Shown here piece after piece: positions 4 to 40,328 of a stretch of 64,000 nucleotides of DNA; positions within the stretch are counted from its first letter, which is position 1; every line of letters begins with the position of its first letter. Under the pieces are notes generated by a model. The model had not been told where the DNA came from. It ran no database searches and saw only the letters and a program-made list of their open reading frames with translations. Made by a program: the position numbers and the translations under genes. The DNA is taken from contig OZ249439.1 in assembly GCA_965235115.1 (NCBI GenBank), positions 17,670,001 to 17,734,000 of the forward strand, in the 5' to 3' direction. This DNA is from Laetmonice hystrix. Taxonomy: Eukaryota.

Positions 4-64
4 ATGGGTAACATCAGCTGTACGAGTGGGACGTGCTCAGTGATTGCTACCAAGGTCATGACAG
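4..64 (+). CDS. Candidate alternative first coding exon of the DLC-family gene (MGNISCTSGTCSVIATKVMT + G)
   Basis: ATG at 4, open frame to a strong CAG|GTGAGT donor at 64/65. The phase-1 G joins AG of the exon at 40878 to give ...KVMT-EIEAVEACKW. Upstream context lies outside the window, so it could be an internal exon. Confidence 0.5.
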
Positions 65-832
65 GTGAGTGTCTGCAGACAAACGTCAACAACAGGTTAC
101 CTCTCACAGATCCAGTTTCTTGGTTCGGGAACCGTGGCCCTGAACGTCACTCTCATTTCTCTAGATTTTCTCATTTGGTGAGAGAGATTATTAATTGAAA
201 AAAGAACAGGTTTGAACTAGTGGGTAATTTTCCTTGACATGAGTAATTTGAACCTCTTAAATTTGATATTTGGATTCTATTTAGTCCAAGACCGAAATTA
301 TTTAAGATTTTGAAAGAACTGCTGTTGGTTGAATTAACAGTTCATATCGTAACTGCTTATATAGACAAGGGGAGAAGGTTATAGACAGTGATTGCCAGCC
401 AATTTAAGGGACAGACCCCTTCACAGGGATCCACTGCGTAATTTCCTTACATTCAACGAAAGTTTTGCTGAAGTTATTCAAATGAAAATAGATTAGAGTG
501 TTTGGTCGTGGTCAGTGGAATTTAGACAGACCGTGAGAAGGTTGAATGTATATAATGTAATATAAAAAATATTCGAATGCCATCTAGATCAACAACTACA
601 TAATGTATATTGCTCATTATCATTACAAAGTGAAAGAACATTCAATTCAGGGTTGGCAAGAAAAGTTGCAGGCCAGCAGTTTCATGACCTGCATTCTCTT
701 CCTTTAAAAGATCATGACATTCTAGTGTGAGTGTGGACTTGTTGAAGGACTATAGCTGGCCTGGTGTCAGTGTATGTGCTGGTATATCATAAGGTCAGAA
801 GCGGTGTTTTTGGATAAAGGTGGCCGCGGGGG

Positions 833-864
833 CAGACAGACGGACAGACAGACAGACAGACAGA
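833..864. repeat. (CAGA)n microsatellite
   Basis: About 8 CAGA units, one of them a CGGA variant. Confidence 0.9.
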
Positions 865-3800
865 GATACGTCTCCATCACCATCGACCCAGAGAGTGTGT
901 GTTTAGCCTACATTAAGGTATCATCCATGCAGGCTGCTGGCACTCCTTACTGTCCTGCGGTCCAGATTTTGACAGATGATCCATTGTGATGGTAGGCAGG
1001 GATGCTCTCCATATATCACAATATGCTGCCACGGCAACGCTAACATACATCTTGGAGGTCAGATGGGATGATAGTGGTAGTGGCTATGGTGGTGGCCAGC
1101 ACCCGCCATGCTGACATCAGCTCATGTTGGCCGCTGACATGGAACCGGCTACTGATGATGAATTCCAGCGTATCGTGGGCAACCACAGATCTGTTAAAGG
1201 TTGTGTGAATTCCCGTTAAAATGTGATTGGTGTCAATAAAGGAATTGGACTGGGCTGGCAGGGATAGTATACTGACTGGAGAAAATTCTCCATCCTCTGC
1301 TCCTAGGTGTACATCTGTTACTGGTATATGTCGGTCCATCGATGTACATGTTTGTGTGCAATCGATGGTCAACAAGATTTTCGGGAAAGATGGGGGGGGG
1401 GGGGATCTCAGATAATCGGACATTACTGCATTGATCCCATTTTAGATAAAGATTGAATTATCTCAGATAATCTGTGACACCTTATATCGACTGATTCTCT
1501 GATGACAACTGTATATCGTCCAAGGATGACATTGTGATTCTGTAGCTTCAATCTTACACCAGGTGGTAAGAACAAAGATCAGAAGGTGAGTGTCGGTTGA
1601 TGTAGGTAACCACATTTGATCCAGTACCAGGACTTGGGAGGTGATTGTTGTTTGTTTGGGCTCCAGGTATCAGCAGTGGTAATCCGGAATATAATCTCTG
1701 AATTCCTACACATAACCCTGGACCAGATCAACAAGCAGGACAGGGGAGACAGCCGCTGTGAGACTGTTAGAGTTAGTATCAGGTTTTCGGGGTCAACCAT
1801 GAAACCCTTTGCATATACACTATAACCGCCGTAAGGCTGTGTGTTGCATGCAGGTTTGTGGGTGCATCTCCTCAGTTGCCCATGCAGTAAACTTTTTTTA
1901 GACATTTTTTCATACTCTCATCATAAAATATACGCTGTATAGGCCTACACGTGGAGCAAATGTAAGATATAGTTACTTATTTATAAATGTGGGTTCGCCA
2001 GTTGTAGCCTTGTTCGTTACAAGCAGGCGCTTTCCCTTTCAAATTTGACAACCATATCCATCGTGGCACTATCCCAAATGTGTGTGTCGTCTATCACAGT
2101 CGGAAATGTGGGATTAGATCATAGTTGTTTTGTTGACGTGATGCTGAAATGACGCCCTGACCCAGAGGGGCATGATAAACACCCCATACCCAGGCATAGT
2201 TGTCAACGTTATTACACAACCCGTATCAGTAACGGACGAGACCAAAAAAGTTGTAAATAAAAAAGGGTTTGCTTTACAGTTACTTCTTTAAAAGTACAAA
2301 AATATTTACTTTTATAAGGCAATTTTAGGGTTATCACTTTGATAGGCGGTGACAACACGGGATGGTTAACCAAAACATAAAGTTCTCAACTGGTCTTTGC
2401 TCCAGGCCACTTTAAGATGGAGTTTTACTCTCAGGGGTCTGACCCAGTTCTGTATTTGTGAATAATAGTTGGTTAATAGTGTGTAAATGGTACCACTGGG
2501 TGCTTCAGTTGCATAATTCAGATGAGTTAAGACCCAAATAAAATATTTAGCATTTCGATGAAATGTCACGAGCAGAAGCGTGCCGGCCGGCCGACCCCGG
2601 TTTAGTATGTACACACCCCGTGGTGGGCAGAGAAAAGGTCGTGCCCAAACGTATAGCTCTCGTACTGAGAGGCGAACAGGAAAGTGGTCCCCAACAAACA
2701 GTAAAGGTGGCACTCGCATTGATTCGGAACTTGCGAAACGAAAGTTTCGATGTGCCGTCCGAATGTTGGGAGACGCTAAAGGTGGAGGGACCAGGGTATG
2801 GATTACGATACTTGACTTTGTTAGTGGAAACTTTCTCCAGGATTATAGGATATTAATTCTTTAATCTCTATGATTGTTTGTATTGAAAACTAATACTGGT
2901 GAGAATGGGCTAGGCCTCTGGATCGCAAGTGTGCCGAAACCATAGACGAATCTATGCTGGAGATACAGTTTTCACTTGTAAGTGTCATGGATGTTCATCC
3001 TACTGCCGTCTATTGTTTGAGTTGGTTGGGGTCATCACCCCGACACCGGGGGGTTCTGTGATACCCTGTGACGGACCCACGTGTCCGGGACACACACACG
3101 TGTCCAGAGGTCGGTAGTCGGGGTTCATGGTGTTACCTGAGAGGTCCGTATCCATGACAGTTGTGAGGGTGGCCCAGAGATCCCTCATTGTGTACCAAAC
3201 CAGGTCCATTGTTGTCGGACGGGCACCCGTGGTGAGCAGTTGCTCCTCCTGGCACGTCAGCGGACACAGACCCCGAGAGAAGTGTTCCGTGCCGTGTTTC
3301 TGGTTGAGAATCTCTGTGGTGGTTTCCCGGTTCTCAGTGTACTAAACGTTCTCACTACAGAGATTACCAGGGAACTGTACTGAGGCGTGCAAGGTGCTGG
3401 CGGGGTCACTGCTGACAAGCAAACTTTGACGGCCGGGCAGCACTTTCATTGTTAAGTGGCAGAAATAGGTTTTTCAAAGTAAGGAACTCCAGATTGCCTA
3501 GAGAGGGATGCCCTTGGCGTTTTTCAGTTGTCTCGGAATACTAACATAATGGGTGTAAATAATGTATCTGAAGGCCAAGTTGATACCATTCTTTTATAGG
3601 TGTTGCAACTGTCAAGTACTTTTCACGGGGAGTCATGACAAATTAACTATCTCCAACTCTAAACATACTTGTGTTTCGCTGTTGATAGTAGGAAGTATGT
3701 AAGGTGAAAGAGAGTTCAAAGAAAGCAGAGAAAAACAACATCAAAGAAGAATGACATTTTAATTTTTTGTCAAGTTTTTGGTTTTCTAGCATCTAGATTC

Positions 3801-5086
3801 ATGTATGTTGCTGTGATTCGGCGGATTGTCGGCACGATGTATGTGTGTAAGGTTACACCTTGACATTGTTGAAGGTTAGCCTGTTTATCAAACGCTCGTC
3901 CTTGTCGAGGATCGGTTCAACTTTTGACCCAAAGTCTGACGTGACAGCGCCTTTAAGAATGGGACGACAGCGACTGACGAGGCGGGGAGCCCGGGTATTT
4001 TCTGACGAGATCAGAAGTACGATAAACACGCAGCAGGTATTGGGTGTGGCCTACCAACTTTGGTTTATAGAGGGGACAGATTCCACCAGGTGGGGTAAAA
4101 GTCGGTCGGCACAATCCCAAACCTGGTATTGAGCTCGTTATGGTGACAGCGCGCGAGTCGGGACGCCTTCCTCGGTATCTGACCGATTGCAAGACCGAGC
4201 ATTTATATCTTGATCCTAATCCTCCAGATCTAAACGTGAATCATTGTGAATTCCCGTAACAACGTTTAACGATGGAGTAGGGTATTATAAACCCTGCTAT
4301 GCTGACATGTTTTGTGTAAAGGTAAAAGTATGTTAATACCGTGACGTATGCCCCAGTGGGTGGACAGGGCGATAGCCCGTGGGTCACTCTCATTCAACCT
4401 TAATTACCCCTCCCCACTTTGGTCAATTACCGTAGACAAAGACTCTTTTGATGAAAAAGGCATTATCTCAGTAGACGGAGTATCGTCCCCAGTGTAGGGA
4501 CGGACAGCGGTAACCCGAAAAACCCTACCTCCGATGTCAATCACTCGCTGTGCAAAATCCATCGTAACTACTGCCAGTTGAGGTGTCAATTCTAACGCAG
4601 CCCATCTTTTGTTCCTCTGCTGCACACTTTTCCGAGGATTTTTGCCCAAAGTTTTAATAAATCAGACTTCCGAAATTGCGAATCGCGCTGTTTCACTGCC
4701 GTTAGCCGCCATACTGTTTGTTTTACTGCGCATGTTCAAAACACGCACACTGGCGACCAGCAGGGGAGCATTTATTATTCTAGACCAAACAGCAATTCCT
4801 CCATTATGGCGCCAAACTAGTAGCCAACGTTTGAAATGACTGCTCCCTTCGTGAGCTTGACCCCGGATGTGGATTTACAGAAATGGCGCCGGTTGTAAGA
4901 CTATGGAAAGTGGTCGCTTGGTTTGGAAAATTGGCCGAATCTGTTGCTTAGAGGAACACCAAGTAAGTTCATTGGGCTCAGTAGCTGAAGGTAAAGGCAA
5001 TCTTTTATTTGAAGTGACGGAAGAGGTGATGGCCCACATTCATTTTGCGGGTTGAACGTTTGGTCTCGTAGCCCGTTCGCTAGAGG

Positions 5087-5112
5087 ATAGGCCGTGTATA
5101 CACACGGCCTAT
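5087..5112. other. Perfect inverted repeat / hairpin
   Basis: ATAGGCCGTGT-atac-ACACGGCCTAT: 11-bp stem with a 4-nt loop. Function unknown. Confidence 0.8.
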
Positions 5113-6902
5113 GTTAGAGGCTATATCTCAGTAGTGGACACACCACTGAGTTCCCGAGGTCATATTTAAGCCGGCTCACATTTCATTAGCTGGGGCAGTG
5201 GACACAGCATGGTCCTTGCCTCCTGTGTCGACTCTGTCTACATGTGGTCACTGGACACCACCCTGTATCAGTCACTGGCGCCTGCGGTGGTCAAGTGTTG
5301 GTCAAGCGGCCAGTCGGGCGGGGCCGTTCCATTATCACGGCTGACCCAAGGCATGCACGCCGTCTCGCTGGACCGGTCAGACCCCAGTCGGCCGTACCTT
5401 GGCCATGCCGCCCGTCGGACTTCAGGACTTGGGATCAGGAATTTACACCCACAAACACCTGTTAGGGTTTGCTGTATGGAGATTGGAGGTGACAAGTTAA
5501 GGTGTCATCCACATGGTAGACCGTTCTGAGATCCATCCAGGAATCGTTAACAAATACAGGGTGAACCACTCAGAGTGTGGTTATAGCCCGGCCGTGAGGG
5601 CGTGTTTTACTGTGGACCGGCCGCCGTGTACCAGGACGGCTGTCTACCAACGTGTACTGGACCCGTGGTCCGACTCACTGTGCGCCTAGATCGGGACAGG
5701 TCCGGGTGGGGGAGAGCTACACCATGCTGGCCCACTGGGAAGGTAGAGTGAACCATTGCTGGCATACATTGTTTAAAAAAAGGAACCAGTTAATGTACTT
5801 GGACCTCGTATTTTTTTCTCCGCTCCAAACCCGCCTCGCTGTCATTTTTAATTTAGCAATATCATGGTCAGTCAACGTTACCGTAACCGAAGACTCAGAT
5901 ATCTGTTTTAACGACAAAACTTGAGACCTCAAAGCGTTCAGAATAAGGGTTTATACATTCACCCCACCCAGGGCACTTAACGTTTACTACTTAAGCACGT
6001 TCAAAGAGCATGCCAGAGGTTGCACTAATTTCACCTTTTACGTATATATGACCTCGTGCTTTCAACCCCGTACCACAATGACATTTCCTGACGGAAGTGA
6101 AAGGGGCCCACATTCGGTACCCCACATTCGACCGAGGCTGTGGCTGGCTGCAGAGTTCGGACGGATGTCCCGGCGCTGCTGGACGTAACATCCTGTCAAA
6201 ATACACCAACATGATTGAACTAACATCAAGTATATTATGATATCCTGAACATGCCGCGGTGACCTCAACTGCAACGTGACATCAGGACAACCGATCGTTT
6301 AGGCAATCTAAGAAGCAGGAAACTGTTACATCTTGATGTACACGCATGAATAGATTTTTGCCGAATCTGAATATTATGTGACTCTATCACGAGGTCATTC
6401 CGAGGCACAATGTCTGTGGTGAACCTCATTCAAACCACAATTTTATATTTCTGTAAACTATGGTTTTTGTTTTCGTTTCTACCCCCCCCCCCCTCAATAC
6501 CAAACTATAAAAAAATAAATAAAATAGACTTCAGAAGAATAAATGTCTGGTATCTATAGTAATAGAAACCTACAAATAATGGGTTATTGTACGTGAACAT
6601 GTACAATCCTGATAAAAAGTAATATGCAATTTATCTTGTATTTTTCAGGTATGTACAAAAGTCATGACATCTGTATCAGCAAATAGGTAGGCTTTGTTTT
6701 CGATATTGTGTCCTCTATATCATCCAACATTTGGAATCGGGAGAAACATGTACGGCCTAGTTACAGTCATGTTTGGAATTGTCCAGAGTTGGGATCAGGA
6801 TATGAACTTTGTCTGTTTGTTTGTATATTTTGAGTTGTGGGACGTTACCCAGCTACATGTTATATAGGATGGTGTGACGGGTGGTGGATGTGTCTGACAT
6901 GT

Positions 6903-7266: not shown

Positions 7267-10200
7267 TGTTGGTGGGCTGACCTGTGTCCCACGTGACCGG
7301 AGAGTGGGGATGTAACACGTGATGGGAATGTCGTTATGGGACTCCCTCTAACCGTTCAGTCAGACCCATGGGTCCCAACTCAGGGAAATCTCGGACAGGG
7401 TTTTCCTGGAAAATTAACCAACCTCATCCTAGACTTTGTCAGTCATAAAATACATGCATTCGTTGTTTTCGAAGTTCACTGATCTATGTTAATTGTGCAA
7501 CAAACAATGAAAATTAATGCAACAGCGTACGAATTAGGTTTCCTCAACGAATATTGGTTTATAAATATTTACATATTACTTTACATATTAATTAAAAAAA
7601 TCAATTATACCGAGGAGGAATGTTAATTATTGACGGAAAAAGCGATTTCTGTCTTTCTGTGTGATTACAATAAGGGGACATCCATATTGTAAGTTCAGTG
7701 TTTGTATTTATCTCACCTAAAACATTTTTGCATCAACCCCACTGGTGTGGAAGTTTTAAATACAGGGTTTCAAGGTCGAACCAACATTATTTTTAGATTT
7801 CTTCCATATCTGCCGAATAACAAATGTATTACTTACAAAGTATAGGATAACAGTAATTAGAAACAACTGAAATGTTTTGTGAAATGCAGAGACGTGGCAT
7901 GCGGCTGAATGCTGACCACGGTGAGATGAATGTTTGGGGGGTGGAGATCCCTGTGATGAGGATAAAGCCCACTCCCAGTTATCAACCGTTAAACGTGCTG
8001 GTATGACAATCTGAGTTTGACAGACGTGGTATTCTGACCTCCGTGTACCTGGCCGCTGACGGAATGTTATTAACCAACATGTCATAATTAGGTCTCTCAT
8101 CGAGCACCACTCGGGCTACCCACCCATCATTTGTGACCTGTCATTAGATTCTGTCCTTTCGGGTTCCGTCTCTCATGATTGCATATTTATCTAATACGAA
8201 GGAAGATTCCCAGTGTAAACTAAAGAAGCGAGACCGGTCCTATTCAAACAGTATACCAAGTAACAGAGAGTATACAACATAGGTGGAAAAAAATTGCAAT
8301 CCAGCGGCCCCATGTCTCTCACCAGCCCGTGTCTCTAGGGTCAATTACATAAATTGTTTTATTTCCGGAGGGTCATTTTCTGTAACTTATTTCGGAATCG
8401 GAATGAAGAAACGCTCATTGTGATCAACTTTGGAACGAATATGTCCTAAGTACGTTGTAAAAGAGAAGAGACCCAGTGGATGTGACGTACCGTATGACCC
8501 TGTCGGGAGAATCCTTACTGAATCAGTTGATGACCGTGTGTTCACGTGATCTATACGTACCTCCCCACAGTCACTGTATGATTGAGAGAATGGCAGGAGT
8601 AAAAACAAAAAATTGTATTTTCTCATGATTTACAGATTTAAACCACCATACACAGCAGGTGTTTGTTTATGTCCTATAGTCATAGGCCGCGAAGACAAGG
8701 GAGAGAAATAATAACATGGAATCCGACACTGAGTTACCAAGAACACGTATCTGGTGATGTTTACTGACCATGTTTCTAGTTACTTCACCCAATTAACGGA
8801 CAAATTTGAGCCAGATCTAGTAATAGGAAGAGAGGGGAAGTCTTGTAACCGGAAACCGTGTTTCTCTCCAAGTTTACCAGTATTCGCCAAGGGCGAGTTA
8901 GGCATGTAATGTCAGAACAGCTATTTGACTTTAATTGTTAACCCTTGTCTTTGAGGAAATGCTGGAAAGCCAGACACTGTAGACCATCTGTTCTTGTATC
9001 TATGTATGATAAAATCCTCCGCTTAAACCAGGGGCCTTTCTATAACAAGGGTTTGATAATGGAGCATATGTTTGTTGTTCCATGAAATTGTTTGGTAATC
9101 TCTGATAGATTCAATGCTATGAACCGCAGGAAATCTAAAAAAAAATGTGGAAAAGATTAGAAATAATGAAGGGTTAAACTTTTAAAAGTTCATTGCTGTG
9201 TTGGTCGGGTAAATTGATGCATGAGGGATCAATTACAGCGTGAGATAGCTTTAAGTACCCATGGGTCATGGATCAGTGAAGGTAATCCACAGGTAAGGAG
9301 TGGCCGGAACACTCTTGATAAGTGGTTCTAAGGGTTTAAATAGGGGGTTGTCGAGGAACCTATCTTTAACTAAACGTACCGCCTTATCAGTGCACCTTAC
9401 GGGTATGTTCCTCTGTCCTCAGGTGCTACATTTATCACCATTAAGATAAACTCCGTGTCCCTCCCCCTGAGCTCTCTCAATGATACTGCTGTATGTATAA
9501 GTTGATAACACAGGCTTGGCCCATACCTCTAACCCTAACTCCAAACTGAAACACTCCTTTACCGGATGGCTGAGGGCAACCCCAGGTCAGAGTGAGCATG
9601 ACGCCCCCGCTCTCCCCAAACGACAACGTAACCCAACAATCGACCTGAACTTCAATTCAGTGTTGGTAGTGTCGTCATGCAGCAGAATTAAGGGCATAGT
9701 CTTTATGTATCAGTTAACGCTACTACCATACTGTCCATGCTTCAGTCTATCGAAACAGGGGCAATAGATATACCTAGGTGACCCTTGCTATGGAAACAGG
9801 TTCGTATCCTTTCAGTATCAGTCAGCGTTTAGACTACCCATTATAACATCCTTGCGGCACTCATATTGGTACCCTCATAATTGCACTCATACAGGATGTG
9901 TAAGCTGAAGAGGTTGAGGGGTTTGGGTGCACCTCGTCGTAGGTGGCAGTGAGAAGGGAGAACTCAAAGGGAGTTCCACCTGGTGTTGCCTGACTCCCAC
10001 CCGTCCCCGTCAGCCGGTGGAGCGGGACCCTTTGGGTACTTGACCCCCGGGTGGGGTATTCCTCCCGACCCCGGGTCAACCAGTACAGGGTACGGATCAC
10101 GGAACCAACTGGGCTTTTTGCTTGTTGGTCACTCACAAGATTTCTCGTAGGATTCAGTGAGCATAAACCAGGCAAGGCTGGGGACAGACTGAATGCCACG

Positions 10201-10646
10201 ATGACCTGCCGTACTGGTGGGTTTCCAGTACACACTCGGGTTTTACAATGTGCGAGGGAGAAAGAAAATGGCCCGATTATTTTGGGAGACGAAACGCCAT
10301 TTTAGATGTATGGCCTCAACATGTGTTCAGTCAGTGTTGCGAGGGGAACTGATTTGTCTTCAGATGTCTGTGGGGAGGGGTAAGCTGCAGGAGTGGTCAG
10401 CTCCTCCGGTTGACCCGCTGACCCATGCTTGACATGGGCGGGGTAGGGGTTGGCTCGGCCATTCGCCCGGTCTGGGGCGGTAATTGGTCTGATGTCCAGC
10501 AGAGTGCAGCACCCTCTCTGGCGCGAGCAGCAGCAGTTAGTCAGATCTTGAACGTAGGAACTGGTCTATTTCGATGTGACACAGCTGGAGGAAAAGGTTG
10601 CAGGTGTGCACAGGACGTACTTCATATGATAAACCAACCCGGATCG

Positions 10647-10784: not shown

Positions 10785-10943
10785 CAGGTGTTGCCGATCT
10801 GCCGCCCATGAGGAGGAGGACCCTGGAGCTCTGCCAGCCGGGTCCTTAACCGACAGACCTCTGATGCAACATTCATATGTGGTTGTCTGGTGTAGCAATA
10901 CCCACCTGGTAAAAACTGTCAAGAGGCGCGAAGGATGGCAGCA

Positions 10944-10951
10944 TATTTATA
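10944..10951 (+). promoter_or_regulatory. TATA-like / near-MEF2 element (TATTTATA), possible promoter
   Basis: TATTTATAG immediately 5' of a CAG tract and of donor-like sites at 11083 and 11167. Motif match only. Confidence 0.3.
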
Positions 10952-10953
10952 GT

Positions 10954-10954
<1 letters not shown>

Positions 10955-11004
<50 letters not shown>

Positions 11005-11945: not shown

Positions 11946-12051
11946 ATGTTCCACCAGGAAACGTCTGGGGACACGAAAGCGCCTGTGTCCGGGGCGCACC
12001 ACCAGGTGGCTCTGGTGTTTCAGGAGATGTGTTGTGTGCTTCCTAATACAG
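11946..12051 (+). CDS. Candidate alternative first coding exon (MFHQETSGDTKAPVSGAHHQVALVFQEMCCVLPNT + G)
   Basis: First ATG after an in-frame TAA at 11901, with A at -3. 35 open codons to a CAG|GTGAGT phase-1 donor. A second in-frame ATG at 12027 gives MCCVLPNT. Confidence 0.5.
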
Positions 12052-14588
12052 GTGAGTGACACAGGGGGTCAACCTGCAGGTACACGTATTCTCAGTCACA
12101 ATCGGTGGAATGTATTGACGGTGTTTCTAGATAGATTTCTAACAAACGTTCTCACAACTGTTAGGCCCCCAGTAACCCACAACAAATACAAGCATGTCCA
12201 TCTGTCACTCACTTCCACGTCTTACTGACAGATTAATGACCTTGACGATGTTACTTATGAGACAGCCGGGTTTATCCCCTTGTCATCCGTGTTTCTTTAT
12301 GACATAATTTTTCATTACTCGCTCAGTTATTCCCCTGTTTACAAGCGGAGATGCTCCAGCCCATTTTATGTCCCATTGACTTCTTTGAAGTTGAATGACA
12401 TGCGTCACCTGAATGACAGCAGGGTCTGAATAAGTCGCCTGCTCGGTGAGGGATAACACTGACGATATACGAGGGCATACGACAACAGGTTGTTTGGGTA
12501 ACCAGCTGGGGTTGTTTGATAAGGCTGGCTGCAGCCCGCCCACGCTGGGGGTGGGTCGGGGTGGGGAAATGACCCCCAGAGCGGAGAGGGGGTCACCCCT
12601 TGCTGGTCCCTGCCCACCCCAGCAGGAACTACCGTCACCCAGGGACCAGTCCCTCAGTGAATGCCCACAGGGGGGCTGGTACTCTGAAACGTTCGCAATA
12701 AGATTTCATTGCTTCAGATTCTCGTGTCTCGTATGAGCACACTTCGTCGGCCTCTCGCACTGAACGAAAGGTGGAAGGACCTTTAATATTGCATGAACCA
12801 ACAGTTTATAAGACCAAGGAGTTGGATATGGATTATTTAAGTATAATCTCCGTTAGGTTTCTGGTGGCCATGCGAATAGACTTAAAATACTTTAACTTGA
12901 AGTGATACATTACAGTACAGATAGGGAGTATGGAAACTCAGTGATAGTGAAATGTGTCAGCTGAACAAAAAAAAACCAACCAGGAATCAGGATGTTGTAA
13001 CCATATGTAGATGGACCGTGTTTCTTTGAAGTGAGGTCCTGATAGTTGCATGTGATGACACGATGGTGTTGGTCTGGGTAAGTGTCCTAGAATTTGACTT
13101 TCACTTGGTGCCGTTAACACGGAGAAGGCCGACTGTGTCAGTGTGTACGAGTGTGTGTTGTAAAGCCCTGTTGCCAAGAGCAGCTTGTAAAATGGTCCAA
13201 TCGGACTCTCCTGTAGATGAGGTGTGATTTGAGGGTAGGAAATGGGATTGATCTTAATTAGAATCAGAATGCAGGTGTCTATTGACGTCATCAGAGGGTG
13301 TGATAACTCACCCCAACTAATTGTTCCACTCAGTGTGTCTCTAGACTAACAAGTATCCACTCTCAGATATTAATTGAACGTAAATGTTTTATTATAACTC
13401 TGTCTCGTGAAATAAGACCTGGTTTAAGCGCCTGTGACATTGGCGGGCCCGACGTGGACCGGTAGATCGTTATGTAATCTCTACTAAATTGTTAGAGAAT
13501 CTAGGCCGGCATAATTACCAAACTTGATAGTAGTGTATCTATTCATGGTCGGAACAGGTCGTTGGTGTCTGTCAAGAGGGGTCTATAATTTATGGATTAG
13601 AGTGGGTTTTATATGTACCATCACCCCGGTGGTTATGTAACTATAAAAGATCAAAATCACTTTTTATCAGTCTCTTTGTTGCATGTCATGCTTGACAGAA
13701 AGTCCAGTATTTAAGTGACACGCCTATTAGAAATGACGTAATGTAGATAGCAGAATATTTCATGCCAGTTTGTATTTCACTCTGATATCAAATAGTGAAC
13801 GAATGATGTAGTTTTACATCAGTAAATAAACAAACACTCAGAGGAGGCAAACATTTATTCGGACACGATTCGTCCATACTAGCTTGTGTATAGATTGTGT
13901 GACAGTGGTTCATCTCAAGTTAGATTTTTTTTAAATACCAAAGCTAACATCCCGGACTGTTTATTTGTTTCTCACACAAAATGACTCAAGAAATTTGGAC
14001 GAGGCGTTATTTGTGTGGGGGCAGAGAGGTATGCTGAGATCACTGTGGTTGTTACACAGCCATGAGTAGGAAATAAAATGAGATCAAAAGTTGGGGTGGG
14101 GGTGGGGGCTTCCCAACCCTTGCTCAGCTTTTATTGGTTGGTATTACCGCCGAAACAGAAACGGCTTAACCCGGTGAGTTTCCCCACACAGTTTGATTGG
14201 TCACGTGCAGATTATGGATTCTCGTCAATAAGTGCCATGCTGGGACCATGAAGTGTAGCAATGCTTCCTATGTCTGATTGACCGAGGATGGCGCGCTGGA
14301 AGAGTTAATAGTGTTAAGAGTGTTGCATGATGAGGATATGAAACCAAGTACCGGTATGTATAGTACCGTAATGAGACTACGTCCCCCGACACTTGTATCC
14401 TGCTAGACAGGTTGATTGACGGAACTTCGCCTAGCACAGGGCAGTCAATACAGCCGTACATATTGGCTGCATCGTCGACACTGAGCATATTGTCAGCTTG
14501 GTTGATCTCAGCGTGAGAGGTGTGGAATTAGTCGGGCCCACTGTGACCAGAACTGTTGTGAATGGGGAGGACATGAGCTGTGGTGAAG

Positions 14589-14628
14589 ATGTTCGGACCA
14601 GACTGCCCAGCCCATATTATCACCCAAG
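14589..14628 (+). CDS. Candidate alternative first coding exon (MFGPDCPAHIITQ + G)
   Basis: aagATG after an in-frame TGA at 14574; strong AAG|GTGAGT phase-1 donor compatible with the exon at 40878. Confidence 0.5.
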
Positions 14629-26630: not shown

Positions 26631-29358
26631 ACTGGCTGAACAAACACTGACGTTTGGTCCTTATAATCCCCACTGACACCGAGGTAGCTAGATCTACCTG
26701 GGGCCTGGGTGTGCTGACTTGGCGGATACAGTCTCCCCTCCCGCCATTATCTGCCACACTCCGAATGGAAACTCACCTTGTCAGGCGTTAGCTGCCGAGA
26801 CGGACCGTTTAAAACAAATGTAAGTAGAAACATACATCATTCCCAGGTGCATATTGCTGGTACATGTAAACCCAACCCAACGTACGATCAAAAATAATCT
26901 TTCTGACCAGAATTTTAGATAATTATTCTAATTGTCTCAAATTGAGTGGTTTTCAGTAATTGGCGTGTAGACTTATGCAGAGCTGTGAAATTTATTCCTG
27001 AAAGTTTATGTTTGAAAGGGTATGATTAAAACAGATGGTGAACGACTGACTGACAGTAGGTCAGTGACTGCCAGTCCCGAGCCAAGGTATGCAGGCAAAA
27101 CGTGTGTTCACCTGAGACCAAGGAATGACGGTTATTAGAGTTAATCCCACACCCACGACTATCCCTCGAACAGGTGCTTATCTTTCTCTGCACACCTGGG
27201 AAGTGTTGACAGGATGGAGGAGGGTCCTGATGAAGTGTTTGCTCCAGGGGTTTGTGTGGAATACAAGTATATTGAGAATTAGACGGACTTCCTGCTTGTT
27301 TAATGGCTTACATTTGAAGCTGACTAAGAATATGGATCCATGAGACAACAGTGGTGAGAGCGAACGGCACAAATATAATTATAATAGCTGATAGAATTTA
27401 AACCTGGATTTGAGAATGGGGTTCGGATTGTGAACTTTCAGTTAACTCGTTCGGTCTGAATACGATAAGAGCGGGGAATCGTGCGTTTACTTGCTGGTTA
27501 GTACAGAGTTTTCAGTGGCGCCTAATTATTGATGACACCTACCACCAGGTTGGGGTCAGTTTGGAGAGGAGATGTAATTCTGGGATTCAGGGTTAGGTCT
27601 GTGCGAGGCTGGGGGTATAAAGTCGGACCCAATGATTGGGCGGGCCGCTATGGGATATACATGTACTCTCATACTCTGACATATGGAGTAACTGAAGTAG
27701 GCCGGAGACAGATGGCCGGCTGTGTGACCGATTATCATCTCCAGGATTGTATTATCCTAGGCATCATGGCGGAGTATACAAACCGCTCGCCGGGCTCCTA
27801 CACTACGGGTGCAAGTCATTGCTACCCCCGGGCTTGCCTAGGAGAAGAATCACCTTATTGTAGAACTCTCGCCAACCCAAGGTGTTGTGAGATCAAAGTT
27901 CATGAGAACCTTGTCTGATCCCCATGGATGAACCCTACTAAAAGACAAAGGACACAGGAGGAGAAGGGGCCACTCCAGTACCAGTAACCTCCTTGTCTTC
28001 TCATCATCTCCAGCAACAGTATAGACCGGGGCAGTGCAAACCGGGCCCCCCTCATACTCTTGTATACATTACACAGTGGCACTGGAGGGTCTCTATGGAC
28101 TGGAGGACAAGGGAATGCTTTCCACCCTGAGAGCATTAGGGCAGTGAAGGATCAGAAACTGCTGACAGGATCTGGAGACCAAACACATGTTAGAGACGAC
28201 TGGAGGAGCGGCTGGCTGGCTGGTGGCCGTCAGTAGGCAGAATTAGGATGATTTCACTGTGATCGGCAAGACCTTCAACTTCTCTCATCTCTCGCCTTGA
28301 TGACAACCGGACGAGCCGACGAGCATGGCAAGGATCCAGGTGTTTGGACTCCAGGCACGTGGGACCTGTATGACTTAGCTATTCTACCTTCTTGTGTAAA
28401 ACGGCTACCTACGATGATTGCAGAAGTTTACCCAGAATATTGTGGGTTCTCGGGTTCCGGCTTGCATTTACAGTGTGAAGCGATAAAGAAGAGCGGGTCA
28501 TCTTAAACGATGGGTTAGTCCTTACAAAGGTTACAGCGGTCTACCTCATTAATATTCCAACATCGTTGACCCCTGTTCAATATTGACGTCCGGGTGTGTA
28601 CGCCAAGTATTATATACACTGGGTCCATTTCCTACGCGTGAATTCGCTTCTATGGTTGTGGTCAGCTTTGTATAATGATTACAGTTTCCTGAAGAAGATT
28701 TTTCATGGCGGAGCTAGCCGCTACTCGCCTGAAGGTCTCGGCTTCCAGCTAACCTCTGACCGCCACTTGCTGGGACATATTTTGGTCGAGCACGTGCAGT
28801 TCGAAGTAACAGCCTGCCAACACAATGTTCACCTACCGATGACACGTAGAAAAACTATGGTGTCACAACACTGTAACGAATAGCGCCTACCCCCGCGGCC
28901 ACCAAACTCTCAGTGATGCAACACTGCAGTCGTATAACAAACACGGCAGTCGGACGGCGCTAAACTCAACAAGACAGTGCTTTCACAACATGGACGTGTC
29001 CCTTGTAAGTGGTAAACGCACATGGTGATAAGACGGCCTGCAGTGTGGGCTTCAGAAGACAGGAAGTTTCCAGCCACCTCTGCTCCTCCCCGGTCCACAG
29101 CTGGCTGCTACAGACAGTGGCCTGAACCCTAAAAGGCCGCTCTCAAAGGGGGCCCAGCTCGATATCTGCTCCCTACACGGTATGGGGCAGGCCAGCCAGG
29201 CCAGGACGGGACACACCCAGGTCATATGGTCTCAGTGAGGATTTCCTAAGGCACCACCTCAGTCCAGACTTACAGATCGAAATAGGAGGTGGTAATATGG
29301 ACAGCCAGACGTGCCGAGTGGTAGAGACGTGATGTTAGTGATTGTGTGAGCAGCGATT

Positions 29359-29488
29359 ATGGCCTCAGCATGCACACCACCATCGACATCAGCTACACCG
29401 TTAAGTCGGGTGGTCACCTCACCGAGAGATGAATGCCCCTGTGCTGACATATTCGCCATTTTGTCCATCTGGGACCAGTGCTGGTCAG
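29359..29488 (+). CDS. Candidate alternative first coding exon (MASACTPPSTSATPLSRVVTSPRDECPCADIFAILSIWDQCWS + G)
   Basis: attATGG Kozak after an in-frame TGA at 29347, 43 open codons, CAG|GTAAGC phase-1 donor. Confidence 0.5.
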
Positions 29489-31485
29489 GTAAGCTGGAAT
29501 GTAAAAACCCATAAAAAAAACTACTGTCAGTTTTTCCCATGGGTAATGCACAAGGCACACATAACTGACAGAGTGCACATAGCTCGCAGTATGCCAAGTC
29601 GGAAGGTCAGGATTATAGAAAACGCTATGTGTATCAGCTCTGTATCAAAGGTTTGTGAAGTTATTTAAGAGTATAATTTTCATATCATGCCATTAATGAA
29701 ATGATGGAAGGGAACCGCTGGGTAATGTGACTGGAAACTGGAGGGGCCAGCATACTTTCAAGATGGATATAAATTTTAATAAATATCTTCAGACTTCATA
29801 GGAAAACTTGTTGGGGCAGGTCAGACCTCCAGCATCTGTTGTGCAGGTTTTTCATGGAGCGCCGTGATAGCTTGTAGTGGTCCAATCTCATGTGCTGCTG
29901 GCACTGTACTACTGCCCCTGGCCTATAATAGGGGGCCCTGATAACCCGACCAACGGGAGAGATCGTTTGGGAAACTCCCAGCTATCAACAGTTATCAGCA
30001 TGTCCAGATTAGATGGTATTTCTCTGGAAAATACTGGGCATCTAGGCAGGGTTAGCAGACAGGGGTGTGATGTAGGGGCGGAGTTGATGGAAACAATGTA
30101 ATAGGAAGTGGGCTTTGGAGCCCAAACGTTCCGGCAAACCTCTACTCGTACAGTGGCGGGCAGATTGTGGGAGTTTGTAGGTGGGGATCGGCTGTAACAT
30201 ACACGTAGGGTACCACACTTAGCTCTGCAATTCTGAAAGGTCTGAATATTCTCGGACTGACTGAGAGTAAAGGAGATGACATTTAATCCGGATTATCCCG
30301 ATACCAAATCTCAGATTTTTTTAGTGATGATAATTGGATGATGCATATTTACATATCGATTCAGGTGCATTCGCTAAGGGGGCATATATATGGGGCATAT
30401 ATACTGGGACAGGTGAGATAAGCAGTAGGAGAGGTATGTATCGCTATGTATGTGTATTGGGATGAGATTAGGCAGACAACCCAACATATTCCCATTGACA
30501 TTCCCAGCAACTGTTGGGCTATTCTAGTCGAAGTAAGCAATACCAAGTAATAACAGTAGCCAGAGCCACAAGGTGGAACATATAGTGCGTCTTATGAGGG
30601 TCTGGTTTGCCTTTCATTAAATAGACACTCGTACTGATATTTTCCTGGTATGTATTGGTGTAACAGTTAGATCTGGGAGAAACCCAGATCGTCTTGAGAT
30701 GGGATATGATACGGTCGGGTTGGGGGTGGGGGCTGTTCCAGGCCAAACATCTTATCTGGCACATATATAAACATACATTCCGACTGCACACTTACCCTAT
30801 TGTTCCAGTTTGTCATCAAAACCCAGGCCGCGGGGTGGTGGCCGTAGTGAGTGTAACCCAGGGTCGGTAGGCCAGGCCTCAGCCCCCCCCTCCCCCCGAC
30901 ACGCCTACCCCGCCCGCTCCAGTCGGATCTCGGGTTCTGCTCAAGGTCATCAGATGTCATTGGCCCCTAGCAACTGTCCGACGCTTGGAGACGGACCAGA
31001 ACAAGATGTCAGAAATACCTCTCAGTCTTCATCATCATTGCACTGGGTTCGGATAGGTTAGCTGTCCCGAACTGAGAGAATCTTTCTGAATGCTCCATAT
31101 ATTCATTTCTGTTACAATATGGTATTATTGAATATAGGATCTCTAATTGTCATACATAAAGAAAAACAGGAGATTTGTTCTCTCTTCATCCAATACGTAC
31201 CGCAGCTTAGTGCAGAAACTGGGTGTTAGGAAAGTTGATTTGACGCAAATGTTTTGAGTGTGGTACGTTATAGAGCAATGCAAGGTCTCAACAAGTGATT
31301 GCATCGAGCTTTTCTGTTCAAATTCCTGCAGCTTTTTTCTTCGACAAATAGGCCAAGTGTGTATAGTTTGGCGACTGTGAGGATTATGGTCAGTTTGTAG
31401 AAGTGAAGCTGGAACTAGGTTTGGTCAAAGTTTGTAGAACTGGGAGCTTTGCCAACAAACAGATCTGTGTTTTGCCTTCAGCAAT

Positions 31486-32514: not shown

Positions 32515-33274
32515 CATCGGCCACAACAAGACAGAATATCGGAAAATAATTATTATTGACAATTATAAAACAGATAAAATGCTTTTGTAATCACAACACT
32601 GAAAGGAAAAGAAAAGGAAGTATTACTCATAAAGCATAATAAATGACGACTAACAGACAAAGTGCGTCGATGTTTACCAAAGGATGGCGGTCTGGGTGTT
32701 AAGTGTTTGGCTGTGTACAGACAGGCCCCAACCCCTGAGGGTCTACCGACTGGATCTGCAGTCAGTCAGGTGGTAGGTGAGCCCCACAGGTGATCGACCA
32801 GCCGCTATCCTGGACCTTGCTATCTACAGCAGTCTCTGATACAGAGAGCCAGGTGGGCCATATCTGGGTCTCCTTCCATCTGACCCCAACCCCAGCAGAT
32901 ATCAAGCTCAGGCAGTGGTCAGCTCCCAGCATTTTATACTCCGGGATCCGCAGAAGGATGCAGCAGGCTAGAGTGATAGTACTACTTGAATCACAACCGC
33001 TGGACGGTAGGTGGGGTCCGTCTTTGTCCTTTGTGTCACCAAGAATTACTGATGGCAATGCGTGGGGGCAGGTTTGCAAGGTTAACCAAAAACGGTGTAT
33101 GGAGGTGACCTGGTGGGTCAGGGTTTGCGGCCTCGATCTACCGTGTAGATATTGTGTGACTGGTGGTGACCCAGGTCAAGGCGGACCTCCTCAGGTAGAT
33201 GTGTTTGATGTGGCCGCCTCCTCCCACACTGCTACAGTTGAGAATTTCACACCCAACATTCAGGACTCCTTTAA

Positions 33275-34793: not shown

Positions 34794-37700
34794 AGAGGGG
34801 GTTAATTACGGGTGGTAAACGCTGACACCTGAAGGATGAAAGTGTGCGTCTCTCCGGGAGATAACATAGAACCTAAACGAGGACTGGTTCAACAATAATT
34901 TTTCATACAAACGAATCTTTGGAGTAGGCCTATGGACAGTTCTTCAAAGTTAATCGTAAACTGATTGGTTTTACCTCCAGACACTGGAGCAGCGACACTG
35001 TAATAAATAGGCCTGCTGATACGGGTTGTCGTTCCCCGGAGAAAGAGTTCCTGTTAGTAGTGTTACCTTATGCCCACCATGAGACTGTTTCCACCCAGGT
35101 CTGTCACCCTAGGTACGTCCTCCCGGATGGGCTGTCTAGGTTCAGAGGAAGTCAACTGCCTCCGGTGACAGGACTCAGTGGTTCAAATGAATCTTGCTGT
35201 CGGGAGGCCTTTTCACCACGAAGAGACTGAGTCCATGTAACTCAAGTGTCCGACTGTTATCAATGTCTCCACTGATATTCTTGTGGTTCTCCCCAGTGGG
35301 TGCATCACAACCTCCAACCTTTTTTTTACATTTGTAACTTTATCCAGCAGAAAAGGTATATTAAATTCAATCGGAATGTGGCATGGGCCAGGTACTTTGT
35401 GCTGATAAGGAAACCATGACCTTTATGTTATCGCGTACATCTGATATGTGACAGTGACAAATGTTTTAAATGTGGAAAATCATGGTTTGGTGGGTTTTTT
35501 TTAGAAAGGTCAATAAATTCTTTTCTATTGAGTATGTGCCATCGTGTAGTGAAGCAATACGTCTTGGCTCCAGCGATGCAAACATTATTTAGGTTACGAC
35601 TACAAATTGAGGCATTCAGTGAACGTGATGCTGCAGGGCGTTGCGGTAATGATATTGGCCCTCTGTTGACTAACAATGGAACTATTGATGCATAAGAAAC
35701 CAGGTGGCAGTACTGTGGCATATCTGGCCGAGGATCGTTGGTGAATGCACACCGCAGATCTACACCGACGCAGACGCGCGGCAATCAAACCTGTACCCAC
35801 TTTTCTTCAGGCCTGACCTCTACCGGCGTTAACCTTTCACGGCTGCTGTTTAATGTACTTGGTTTAGAGATGGTCCATTTTGATACGGACTTCCTCTGCC
35901 CTGGATGGTATCTGTCCAGCGTACCTGGTGAAACACTGCCCCGTCTGTAGCAGGCCTACTGATAGTCTGTCACTCAGGCCCGCCCGGCCAGTGTCCTGGG
36001 GAAGTCCATCCCCATCCCGTGGCCCTCCGCCTCGTCCCATGCCTATTTGCTGGTCACGCCCATAGTGTCCGCTGATGGTCACATACTTCAGCCCCAGTTT
36101 GTGACAGATACTTGCCTCAGGTCTCAACCAGACAGTGGGGATTGGTTGGAGGATGAGTGTCAGAACAATGTCCGACTTCTTTAAGTGAGCTGCGTGAAAC
36201 GGGCGTTAGGGCCAGCGTGTAATAATGAAAGGGTCGGGTGTTTAGGGGCCCAGGGCACTCTCTGCGGCGGCTCCGAGTGGGGAGTGACTGGAGGGGATAC
36301 ACCACAGCTGTTACACGTCCACGGCTAGGTTTACAAAACAACCCGTGCACGAGCCAAGTCTATGTTCCGGGCATGCTCTGTTTCGAGGCCAGGTTGTGTA
36401 GTTAGCAGACGGTAGAGCCGAGTGGCAGGGGGCACGCGGCGGTACTGGAAGGAGCTGACGTATAGACACGGTAGATAGCATCAGTTTGGTATCCAACCAT
36501 ACAACACTTGCTGGCTCAGCACAGGACTGGAGCATCCAGGAGAGGGTTCATTTTTAGACTGCCAGCTGCCCTCGGAGGGTGACACATTTGTAACTGACAG
36601 CCGGATTGGCATCCTTGTTTAGAACTGGGCAGAAGGAAAGGTCAACCCTCCATGGATATATATCCTCCTGTCAACTGGGCTCAAACCAAGCTGGGCGCGA
36701 GGTGAAAGTCGCCCTGAGGACATCAAAGTCATCAACAGGATGAGGCAGCTCAAGAATCGCCAAGAACTCTCTCCGTGAAATGAACAATTGAAAAGGAGAT
36801 ATTCTCACCAAATCAGTGAGGGCCTGCGGAGGTGGTCCCAGGTTGGCAGCAGTTGGTCGGAGTCATCACCTGTGACCATAGCCACGGACTAGGTGGACTT
36901 GTGGTACAATCTATGTCACCACATCAGTCGGACAAGTTGGCAAACAACAACAAAACAACGTGAAGGTAACAAAAAAGTCGGGTCATTCTTCCATTGATCA
37001 TCTTCAGGAAACGTGTGACGTAACATGTAACGTACGTAACAAGTGTTCACACAAAGGTATGGCCTTTTGATCTCTGGCCGTGAAGAAATGAACTAGCGGG
37101 TAAATTATGTGATGGAATAAGTTAAGGCTGAAAGAAAGAATGGAAGATAAATACGCGGTTACCTGTTTGCTATACAGCATTGCCTAGGGTCGTTAGGGGT
37201 AGCTTTTAGACATGAGTGATGAAGTGACGGATGACCGCCCGGGACAGGTCTAAGTTGATTCCCCTTATTCCCATAGACACTGGGACAACTACATCAATAT
37301 CCAGCGGGTTGGAGGAGAGAAGGGAAGATTTACTCTCATCAAAAACTGCATTTTAGATTAAAGTGTTCTTTTATTTCATATCCAGTCATATCTGGGAAAG
37401 CGGAAGTCACGAAGGGCGTTTCCAAATATTGATTTCAGAAGGTAGTTATGGTGCACCTGCTATTTGAAAGGCAAAGGCTTTAGCGGAAATCAATTTGAGG
37501 AATGGATTATGTGCTCTCGGTATGTGCGAAATTTGATATATCTGCAGCGTTCCTGCTGGTTAAAAAGGATGAGTTGAAGGCTACAGATGTCAGTTCAACT
37601 CTGGCGAAAGGTAGGATCCTTGCGCCTAGTGTAGGTGCCGCTGAGCTTGGCCCACATGTTGACTGTGACCGGCTCGTGGTGTGCCTTGTTATGTGCCATA

Positions 37701-38426
37701 CTGTCGGTGTGAAAGGCCGACCACACCGATCAGCATCGCTCCCCGCCCGGCCATCCGGCACAGGCTGGTGGAGATCTACTCGGCCTGAACAGCTGGTCCA
37801 CTGAATCAGATGTTTACATCACTATGGCCACCCAGGTGAGGGAACAACTCAAGATGGGTGAATGATAACGCCAAAACAACAGTAGGATTAATAGCTTTGT
37901 CATTTACTTTGTTAAAAAAAACTGGTCAAAGCAATTTGTGGCATATGAATGAGGGAAGGACATTGATGTTTTAAAAATATTGAAAAGACCACTATTCTCT
38001 CCAGGAAAGTTATCTCACTTTTTATTGTTGTGAGTCATATGCGGATAAATTATGAAACGCTCACCTGATTCAATGGAATCATGGATCCAGTATTTCTGTA
38101 TGGCCAGTTCAAAAAGATCCTGCTGTACGAGCTGTATCCAGACCAGCATCATTAACTTCGCTGGCTGAGATCTGTATCACCCTGCCGTTCACAGTGACGC
38201 CCTCTGACACCAGGGGTTGAGTTTATCTACCCCACTCCGCCTTGTATGGAAATATTTGAGGTTGAGATATATTAATTTGGGTATTCAAAAGCCTGTAAAT
38301 AAAGTGAAACATTTAAAGAGGGAAGGTGGGAGGTTATCTTGGCCGGGACATCAGAACGACCTGAGGGTTGAGTGAGGGAACCTGAACCTGCCTACAGACA
38401 AGAAGCTCTTACATTGTCTAGTGATA

Positions 38427-38584
38427 CCCAGTAAACCTGGAATACGACAGAATCACTGACGAGTAGTCAGTACAATAATACGGTTAGCTCCCGCCGCGCC
38501 TCATGCCCAGTAAACCTGGAATACGACAGAATCACTGACGAGTAGTCAGTTCGATAATACGGTTAGCTCTCGCCGCGCCTTATG
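38427..38584. repeat. 79-bp tandem duplication
   Basis: CCCAGTAAACCTGGAATACGACAG... at 38427 and 38506. Confidence 0.93.
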
Positions 38585-40300
38585 AAAACAGTCCATAGTG
38601 CAGGATTGTCTCAATGATTTATAAACCATGCCCAGGGGACATTTTTCTGTATTTCTATACGGATAGATGTTTGAATTATGAGTGACATGTTAAAATAAGA
38701 AGTGACTTGACGTGCGTGTTGATATATGATATGGTTAGAAGTGGACTGATAAAAATACGGGGGAAGTGATCCTAAACATATGGCTTAAAATAGATTTTGG
38801 GTCAGCCATCTGTTAAAGCGATCACTTCCTGTTTTAGTTCAACCGACAGATTCAACCTGAAATGGAAATCGTGCAGGTTTACTGGTTATAAGAGGGGGTG
38901 ATGTGTTGAGAGTGGAGAACACACCACCTCATCGATAGAAGGCACCCATACATGTAGATCTACCATCTATGATCTGTCATAACTAATCCGCAGGAACAGG
39001 TGCAAATTAAAGCAAGGCACTTACTTCCCTGAGCCCAGTTTTCTGTCAGATAAAAACTATATTTTATTGTAAGGAGTGTTAAGGACACACGTTCCTATTA
39101 AAAAAGATGGCAGGTATAGGTTGATTTATTCTGTCTACCACGCCCTGGTGTTAGTGGTAGAACATGGCAAACCACTTTGGTGACGAGGTACCATAGCTGT
39201 TAGGGGAAAAAGTGTATTGCTCCAAGGAATATGGGCGTTGAAAGAGTTGTCTGTGCAGTTTTTGAACGCATTCACAAGGCCCATGACCGTCAGTACTGTA
39301 GGGTGGATTGTTATAACGGTATATAAGTGGCAGTTTAGTAAACATTGCACGCCCTGTGGGATCTCTCAGATAGAGGAAGTTAGGTGTCGCCATCATGAAG
39401 ACAGCATGATGGGTCTAGCCGGCACACCTGGCCACACCTTGTGATTGGCTAGAGCGGAGGATTCCGCCATCACCATCTGCCTGTCTTCAAACACAATTCG
39501 CCCTCACGAATTACTCTTGTGTGGGGTTGTGCATTGATTTTGCCATGAACATCCTTGGATTACGATACCTAGGAAGATCTAATCCACGGCAACAAGCTGG
39601 GGAGTTGTTTGGATGAATTATAAAGGATTAGTCCAAGGTGTAATGTGGGAGACAGAGGAGTTCCCTGACCGTGACAAACCGTACCTAGGTTTTGGTAGGT
39701 CATGGTCCTTGTGAAATATAGTCAGAGGTTAGGTGATACAAGCTACACGTAAACAGGGTGGTTGTTTGGGGGTAGTCTCAGGCAGACAGGGCCGCGTTGT
39801 TCAGACCCGGTCGGACCACCGACATGCTACGAGACTTGCTGGCATTCTCATGGCATCAAAACCTGCCGAGTAAATAAGTGAGCACAGGTCAGTGATAGGT
39901 TTAAAGTTAACATCCGAGACATTGCTGAAACCAGTGAAAAAAATAGTAAACATGAAAATAAACAGCTGCGTCGAAGTAAATATGTATATGAACCACCAGT
40001 GTGACTGTGCATCCATGCATGCCATTCCTCTACTAAAGGTAATTTTTCAAAGTCCGTAGTCACTCAACCATGGTGGATTGGGTCAAAAAAGAGCGACCTA
40101 CACTCCCTGAAAACTGGGAGTGTTTCTCCGCACTCAAATGTGTTCAGATTGGATTGTGCCGTTAGAGTGATAGAATGGGGAGTGAAGTTGTCCCTGGTGA
40201 CGTTATTTGGATACAGTCCCAGTGTGGCGTCATCTGTGGATGAACGGACGGTCGACCATTACGTGGACCATTGACCAGGTGGTGTACCAGTGCTGCCACC

Positions 40301-40328
40301 ATGTGGACGTTCACCTCTATCCTGGCAG
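40301..40328 (+). CDS. Candidate proximal first coding exon (MWTFTSILA + G)
   Basis: GCCACCATG context and CAG|GTAACT phase-1 donor, 550 bp upstream of the SAM exon. Confidence 0.45.

Follow-up and report, generated by a model that had tools for sequence, protein, structure and literature searches.

How many N-termini can a single DLC-type RhoGAP gene draw from the DNA that precedes its first common exon, and which of the short open frames seen there are exons? The question is raised by a stretch of 64,000 nucleotides from Laetmonice hystrix (GenBank assembly GCA_965235115.1, contig OZ249439.1; C4:17670001-17734000, plus strand), hereafter called the window, which holds the 5′ part of such a gene. 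A preliminary description of this DNA listed 13 splice donors, six of them ranked as best, that each close an ATG-initiated frame in phase 1, and suggested that they may, apart from some spurious ones, feed one acceptor of the SAM domain at position 40878. Comparison with a related species, together with the splice phases, makes it very likely that an array of alternative ATG-bearing first exons lies upstream of this one phase-1 SAM acceptor.

Identity of the gene and its common exons

By homology, the gene is the invertebrate orthologue of DLC1/STARD13/STARD8 ("RhoGAP7"). Its nearest full-length homologues are proteins of the DLC1/STARD13 type named "rho GTPase-activating protein 7", found in molluscs and one annelid. 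The family's SAM signature, EIEAxEAC.WLR...GFPQYAQ, is split over three short plus-strand exons, A, B and C, which show 54-84% identity to DLC proteins of many phyla. Exon A (40878-40950), the first SAM-domain exon and the common acceptor exon, is entered and left in phase 1. Its acceptor reads tttttcag/AGATCGAA... (given also as tttttcag/AGATCGAAGCA...; here and below a slash within a sequence marks the splice junction), and its peptide is (x)EIEAVEACKWLRAAGFPQYAQMYE. The exon is 74-84% identical to DLC/STARD13 proteins of many phyla by tblastn and shares 95.5% of its nucleotides with the related species. Both the reading of the splice site and the tblastn match thus agree with the earlier assignment of 40878 as a phase-1 SAM-exon acceptor.

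Exons B (50917-50998) and C (55123-55183) were placed by their splice sites and by tblastn matches; for B, the phases run consistently from 1 to 2, and C is 91% identical to its counterpart in the relative. They are followed by a large serine-rich constant exon (59175-60495, plus strand), identified by homology, which agrees with its counterpart in the relative at 76% of nucleotides and 83-85% of amino acids. It opens with ESDEEDQCA.S.KW after the SAM domain, as is characteristic of the DLC/RhoGAP7 family, and as a query it retrieved 109 homologues at E <= 1e-3, the full-length ones being named rho GTPase-activating protein 7 or STARD13. The RhoGAP (PF00620) and START (PF01852) domains are present in all full-length homologues and are expected 3′ of the window here.

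Six conserved coding segments upstream of the SAM acceptor

The region upstream of exon A was compared with that of one related species, represented by ENA contigs 342 and 359 of one assembly. The large exon had its best match on one of the two, which is 396 kb long; the other, probably from the second haplotype, reaches further upstream. Both were walked by exact-protein matching and together cover the equivalent of window positions -10,700 to 64,000. The introns of the two species cannot be aligned, and what does align is a collinear run of short islands. Each of the six donors ranked as best lies inside a conserved, collinear island, and the GT is retained in the relative at 6 of 6. The distance from ATG to donor is the same in both species for E64 (61 nt), E12051 (106 nt), E14628 (40 nt), E20635 (91 nt) and E40328 (28 nt), and differs in frame, 130 against 115 nt, for E29488. 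The conservation that the preliminary description had proposed to look for in related species was therefore found at its six best candidates, each of which is conserved as coding sequence with its ATG, donor and frame.

All six segments lie on the plus strand. E64 (4-64; ATG at 4, 20 codons plus 1 base, donor cag/GTGAGT) coincides with an island at 4-71 that begins exactly at the ATG and is 76% identical in the relative; the ratio of nonsynonymous to synonymous substitution rates (dN/dS) is 0.27, and the peptide starts MGNISC here and MGNVIC in the relative. E12051 (11946-12051; 35 codons plus 1 base, donor cag/GTGAGT) overlaps an island at 11978-12058 of 88% identity, with 26 of 35 residues identical, a dN/dS of 0.24 and an in-frame stop 45 nt 5′ of the ATG. 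E20635 (20545-20635; 30 codons plus 1 base, donor aag/GTAAGT) begins, like E64, exactly where its island does (20545-20701, 72.5% identity), keeps 23 of 30 residues and has a dN/dS of 0.09. E29488 (29359-29488; 43 codons plus 1 base, donor cag/GTAAGC) ends in an island at 29425-29495 of 92% identity; 19 of its last 22 codons are identical, the dN/dS is 0.14, the ATG is retained in the relative, and an in-frame stop lies 12 nt 5′ of it. E40328 (40301-40328; 9 codons plus 1 base, donor cag/GTAACT) is only 550 nt 5′ of the SAM exon, has its ATG in the context gccaccATG within an island at 40286-40332 (91% identity), and encodes MWTFTSILA here and MWTFTAILT in the relative. E14628 (14589-14628; 13 codons plus 1 base, donor aag/GTGAGT) is the weakest of the six. 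It lies in a gap-free, collinear match of 58 nt at 14579-14636 with about 74% identity (local alignment, z = 11.8 against shuffled sequence), keeps 6 of 13 residues at a dN/dS of 0.52, and has an in-frame stop 15 nt 5′ of its ATG. Conserved peptides among the six include ...VSGAHHQVALV.QEMCC.LPNT, one that starts MAQT... and ends ...LDLAFNIHK, and ...ECPC.DIFAILSIWDQCWS.

When the six segments were pooled (129 codons), dN/dS was 0.21 in the predicted frame, which has no stop, and 1.16 and 3.91 in the shifted frames, in which 4 and 7 stops occur. Differences between the species fell at the three codon positions as 26/14/47 of 129 each (p = 4e-6), a periodicity that was also seen in the large constant exon used as a control (47/30/214); the other conserved islands tested had none. 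The predicted frame of the six is thus under purifying selection. By these comparative measures, the six segments are real, conserved and translated alternative first exons.

Such islands could instead be regulatory elements, or exons of a nested gene or a long non-coding RNA with no relation to the DLC protein. In favor of this, some 30 further islands within the 40-kb region and immediately 5′ of it are conserved and clearly non-coding. Codon periodicity and a dN/dS of 0.21, however, are confined to the phase-1 frame. The six segments, moreover, all lie on the strand of the gene and carry strong donors whose phase matches that of the downstream acceptor, and there is no acceptor or terminal exon of the kind that a separate gene would require. 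We therefore regard this explanation as very unlikely.

Donor strength and the expectation by chance

A long intron will contain ATG-initiated frames that end at donor-like sites, and those that fit may simply have been picked out. All 13 listed sites (13 of 13) are indeed AG/GT donors with an ATG-initiated phase-1 frame, and the preliminary description had stated that about half of some 29 donor-like sites passed this test. Every plus-strand GT in positions 1-40877 was therefore scored with a donor weight matrix (PWM) and without preselection, and the phase-1 ATG-frame rate expected from trinucleotide content was computed as 27.7%. At PWM >=2 such a frame was found at 46 of 163 donors (28%, p = 0.47), which equals the expectation. 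The rate rose to 18 of 46 (39%, p = 0.06) at PWM >=4, to 11 of 22 (50%, p = 0.02) at PWM >=5 and to 4 of 5 (p = 0.02) at PWM >=8. When the six best sites were removed at PWM >=4, the remaining 12 of 40 (30%, p = 0.43) were at chance level. The enrichment is thus real among strong donors only and weaker than the earlier figure of about half of 29 suggested, and the six best sites carry all of the excess. The unbiased scan that had been proposed as a check gives an enrichment that persists at high scores and is gone once these six sites are taken out.

The loose-threshold rate, the chance-level remainder and the fact that five of the seven weaker candidates lack convincing conservation of any kind all favor a chance origin. 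For the six best sites, they are outweighed by the retention of ATG, donor, length and codon-position pattern where the surrounding introns are unalignable. Of the 46 donors with PWM >=4, the 18 that close a phase-1 ATG frame include 6 that are conserved as donors in the relative, and the other 28 include none (Fisher p = 0.002). A second scan started from conservation, made no use of the earlier list, and collected the GTs that are donor-like in both species within the islands. It returned eight plus-strand donors, seven of which have an ATG frame in both species, and phase 1 is the phase of all seven (7/7; binomial p = 8e-4). On the minus strand, these islands yielded only three weak donor sites, in phases 0, 1 and 0. 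As an account of the six, chance is refuted by this conservation and is now exceedingly improbable; it stands for 6648, 9281, 16402, 23379 and 25561.

Donor-like sites were about twice as common on the plus as on the minus strand of 1-40877 (163 against 98 at a score of >=2; 46 against 24 at >=4). This bias accompanies an excess of G over C on the plus strand and is a composition effect that one-strand scans should correct for.

None of the seven candidates that had been ranked as weaker is supported as a coding first exon by conservation in the relative (0 of 7). For 9281, 16402 and 25561 the match to the relative is no better than with shuffled sequence; 6648 has no match, though the relative's DNA covers the region; and 23379 has a low-complexity match only. 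The site at 21889 lies in a conserved island, but indels break its frame, and its donor is weak and displaced. The doubtful candidate ending at 24661 (24649-24661, plus strand) keeps its donor in the relative, with the ATG not at the corresponding place. The sites 21889 and 24661 probably belong to the class of conserved non-coding islands. A further doubtful candidate, absent from the earlier list, lies at 32958-33006 (plus strand), where the two species share a weak donor and, 49 nt before it, an ATG; 6 of 16 residues of its peptide are identical, its dN/dS is 0.60, and the island at 32973-33174 has no codon periodicity.

Two further phase-1 exons upstream of the window

Two more 5′ exons were found on the plus strand upstream of the window. 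The first, at C4:17651925-17652042 (window -18075..-17958), was recognized by homology as an ancient first exon of the type RSFSER...RRLA. It lies about 59 kb 5′ of the SAM exon and about 18 kb 5′ of the window, begins with ATG, comprises 39 codons plus 1 base in phase 1 with the donor cag/GTGAAT, and encodes ...RSLSERLRG...RRLA. It is 46% identical over 28 amino acids to the N-terminus of a gecko STARD13 isoform, with the same junction at its end. An abalone isoform matches it at 35% over 37 residues, and it also occurs in chiton isoforms. When the N-terminal parts of 154 homologues were compared by tblastn with the 104 kb examined, this exon was the sole match; inside 1-40800, tblastn with 12, then 224, then 154 N-terminal parts of homologues gave none. 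Its mouse counterpart is the first exon, of 47 residues, in the 6.2-kb isoform of Dlc1 (PMC2839985).

The second is a long 5′ exon of about 295 codons (about C4:17661681-17662563; window -8319..-7437) that is open in both species (27% identity, E = 7e-17), its frame extending over 304 codons in L. hystrix and over 309 in the relative. It ends at a conserved phase-1 donor after ...RVLAQ.I.SRWR, 7.4 kb 5′ of the window, and is probably the N-terminal exon of a long isoform. Its tail, ...RVLAQ.I.SRWR, resembles the ...SRILARHQL..KIQQ/E junction of vertebrate STARD13.

Together with the six in the window, there are thus at least eight 5′ exons over about 59 kb, all in phase 1 and all with an ATG and a donor and without an acceptor, that feed the acceptor at 40878, the join itself being deduced from phase and homology. 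ATG and donor are kept in 7 of the 7 that the relative's contigs cover.

First exons, internal exons and candidate promoters

A segment with a donor could also be an internal exon. In this case, the six would be cassette exons of transcripts that start far upstream, included serially or in a mutually exclusive manner, rather than first exons with promoters of their own. The two 5′ exons that precede the window, at about -18 kb and -7.4 kb, provide origins for such transcripts, and abalone isoforms pass from some of their first exons to the SAM exon by way of a small shared one. The sequences immediately upstream of the six point the other way. Each segment starts with an ATG kept in both species, and conservation starts at or near that ATG. 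In-frame stops lie 12-60 nt 5′ of the ATG in the five exons in which this can be read, the frame of E64 reaching the start of the window. In the alignment with the relative, no conserved pyrimidine tract with AG was found 5′ of any of the six, and the sole AG that fits in frame 5′ of E20635 loses its frame in the relative. The internal-exon explanation was rejected on account of these upstream stops and the lack of conserved acceptors, and we consider it unlikely. A donor without an acceptor confines an exon to the 5′ end of its transcript, and no transcript could therefore carry more than one of the six.

Conserved non-coding islands precede E64, E12051, E29488 and E40328 by 0.2-1.2 kb. Upstream of E64, the island at -561..-464 is conserved, non-coding and a candidate promoter. 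The island at 10819-10961, about 1 kb 5′ of E12051, is 81% identical, has no codon periodicity and may be a promoter or an enhancer. The one at 27698-28191, about 1.2 kb 5′ of E29488, aligns over 498 nt at 71% identity, 18 gaps included, likewise has no codon periodicity and is a candidate promoter. The island at 39999-40076, 225 nt 5′ of the ATG of E40328, is a candidate core promoter, ungapped, 79% identical and without codon periodicity; the GT at 40039 within it is not conserved. For E20635, conserved non-coding islands are found at 15716-15812 and 16052-16123 (the latter 90% identical), which are candidate promoters too, although the distance to the nearest is about 4.4 kb in L. hystrix and about 1.7 kb in the relative. 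A conserved TGAGTCA (AP-1-like) site is present in 15716-15812. No CpG islands were found as evidence for promoters.

A model for the 5′ region and points against it

Taken together, the 40 kb 5′ of exon 40878-40950 would be the long first intron of isoforms initiated upstream, with six first exons embedded in it. Each embedded exon would provide its own ATG, 9-43 residues and a phase-1 donor, and would be spliced directly to 40878; for the six, this splice is predicted from phase and family homology. Presumably, each isoform is driven by a promoter of its own. The outcome would be at least eight proteins that differ only in a short N-terminal peptide and share a common body of SAM domain and serine-rich region, which would be followed, as in the homologues, by RhoGAP and START.

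Several observations weigh against this model. First, the public runs that contain the locus, as found by a search with the large exon, are four genomic DNA runs from one sample. Their nature is clear from the coverage over 35050-41049, which is even between intron and exon in all four. With the large exon as query, the protein collections of this species and its relatives yielded single-exon genomic open reading frames only and no spliced products. Second, an intermediate mini-exon of the kind seen in abalone isoforms may be used by some of the exons. Third, the comparison covers one related species, as two haplotype contigs. E14628 is weakly conserved (6 of 13 residues), E14628 and E40328, taken singly, are too short for strong statistics, and no conserved island was seen just 5′ of E14628. 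Fourth, a separate promoter for each first exon is inferred, with nearby conserved non-coding islands as its only basis.

Comparison with known systems

Compared to vertebrate DLC1, the locus shows the same basic design, in that several ATG-bearing first exons join the same second exon, with which the SAM domain starts (PMC2839985; PMC5118400). In mouse Dlc1, with isoforms of 6.1 kb and 6.2 kb, first exons of 13 and 47 residues join exon 2 at the SAM start from promoters up to 133 kb away (PMC2839985), and five isoforms of human DLC1 arise from alternative promoters (PMC5118400). For comparison, 13 residues are encoded by E14628 and 39 by the RSFSER exon, which has the same RRLA/E junction. 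In the databases, proteins from vertebrates, echinoderms, hemichordates, annelids and molluscs have many different N-termini at the same x/EIEA junction. These N-termini and the mouse study (PMC2839985) support the premise, stated in the preliminary description, that alternative promoters of DLC1 and STARD13 join this same exon.

The differences from vertebrates are of number and spacing. Mouse Dlc1 has three promoters, whereas at least eight N-termini are predicted here, known from genomic sequence alone; they lie within about 59 kb, while three human promoters span about 400 kb. Six of the N-termini here have no detectable counterpart beyond the one related species. Closer in number are the RhoGAP7-like genes of abalones (Haliotis rubra, H. 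rufescens and H. asinina) and other molluscs, in which at least six N-termini meet x/EIEA; the abalone isoform names run to X8, and the isoforms include the RSFSER exon and a 15-residue Cys-rich first exon. The shared mini-exon that precedes the SAM exon after some abalone first exons was not found here, and the 80 kb examined contained no first exon of the molluscan type "MAxxC.Y.KSLS". The architecture is thus already known for the DLC family, and the present locus is a further, somewhat richer example. The earlier suggestion that the gene may have expanded this design into a larger cluster holds insofar as the array exists and has two more exons upstream. It goes too far in degree, since at least eight is only modestly above the five isoforms of human DLC1 and the six or more N-termini of abalones; nor are the exons paralogues of one another.

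Protocadherin and UGT1A loci likewise have mutually exclusive 5′ exons set in a row, which are spliced to shared exons downstream. If the array were of this type, its exons would be tandem duplicates with a shared promoter element, chosen stochastically or by cell type, and several 5′ exons in a row upstream of constant exons are what such a cluster would look like. Yet protocadherin and UGT1A exons are large tandem paralogues, whereas the exons here encode short, unrelated peptides of 9-43 residues with no domain and have no DNA or peptide similarity to each other. In eight upstream regions of 400 nt, no 9-mer was common to three or more, and no shared motif was seen. A duplicated array was rejected because the exons lack mutual similarity and no repeat family occurs among them, and it is barely conceivable as an explanation of the locus.

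The design is therefore not a new kind of gene organization. The many-promoter layout of RhoGAP genes of the DLC tumor-suppressor type is probably older than the vertebrates. The RSFSER...RRLA exon is shared from this invertebrate to vertebrates, while most other first exons turn over within lineages. The analysis also has practical consequences: a reading of the sequence by itself found real first exons of 9-43 codons, a class that gene predictors usually miss, and the comparison with a relative yielded coordinates that can be used directly for annotation.

Possible roles of the N-terminal peptides

Cysteines make up about 7% of the residues in the six peptides, and 10 of 11 are conserved between the species. 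E64 begins MGN..C in both species, and conserved CC or CxC pairs occur in E12051, E20635 and E29488. The MGN..C start of E64 fits what we take to be the usual pattern for N-myristoylation, with a neighboring cysteine that could be palmitoylated. Given the 10 of 11 conserved cysteines and the conserved MGNxxC motif of the myristoylation/palmitoylation type in E64, it is plausible that the most likely role of the N-terminal peptides is targeting, as alternative membrane-targeting tags. A bolder proposal is that the single DLC-type RhoGAP of this invertebrate lineage carries at least eight promoter-specific N-terminal address tags, several of them lipid anchors, that direct it to different membranes according to cell type. 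We put this forward as speculative and, on present grounds, rather doubtful. If true, one gene would do what vertebrates divide among three paralogues with several promoters each.

Other conserved islands, repeats and mobile elements

Other collinear non-coding islands in the window were found at 2428-2554, 3845-3987, 4381-4469, 5124-5284, 10035-10087, 10480-10516, 21209-21320, 21774-21892, 23048-23161, 25233-25318, 32973-33174, 35650-35948, 36277-36673, 43125-43269, 43495-43619, 47419-47507, 48664-48719 and 62895-62940. They share 65-89% identity with the relative within otherwise unalignable introns and are probably enhancers or promoters.

The introns also hold two minisatellites, one at 18032-19938 with a 33-bp unit in about 60 copies and one at 45153-47090 with a 60-bp unit in about 32 copies, both of which generate long spurious open reading frames in several frames. 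A 79-bp tandem repeat in two copies occupies 38424-38581. In a contig from one of the DNA runs (X2), precisely one of the 79-bp copies is missing (38472 to 38552); the haplotypes that were sampled thus differ in copy number.

Retroelement sequences lie between the constant exons. Gag-like open reading frames are found on the minus strand at 51293-52301, in the intron that separates SAM exon B from exon C. An intact-looking open reading frame of 888 amino acids from a non-LTR (non-long terminal repeat) retrotransposon lies on the plus strand at 56097-58763, just 5′ of the acceptor of the large exon. The latter insertion is absent from the relative, in which the distance from exon C to the large exon is about 0.6 kb, compared to 4 kb here.

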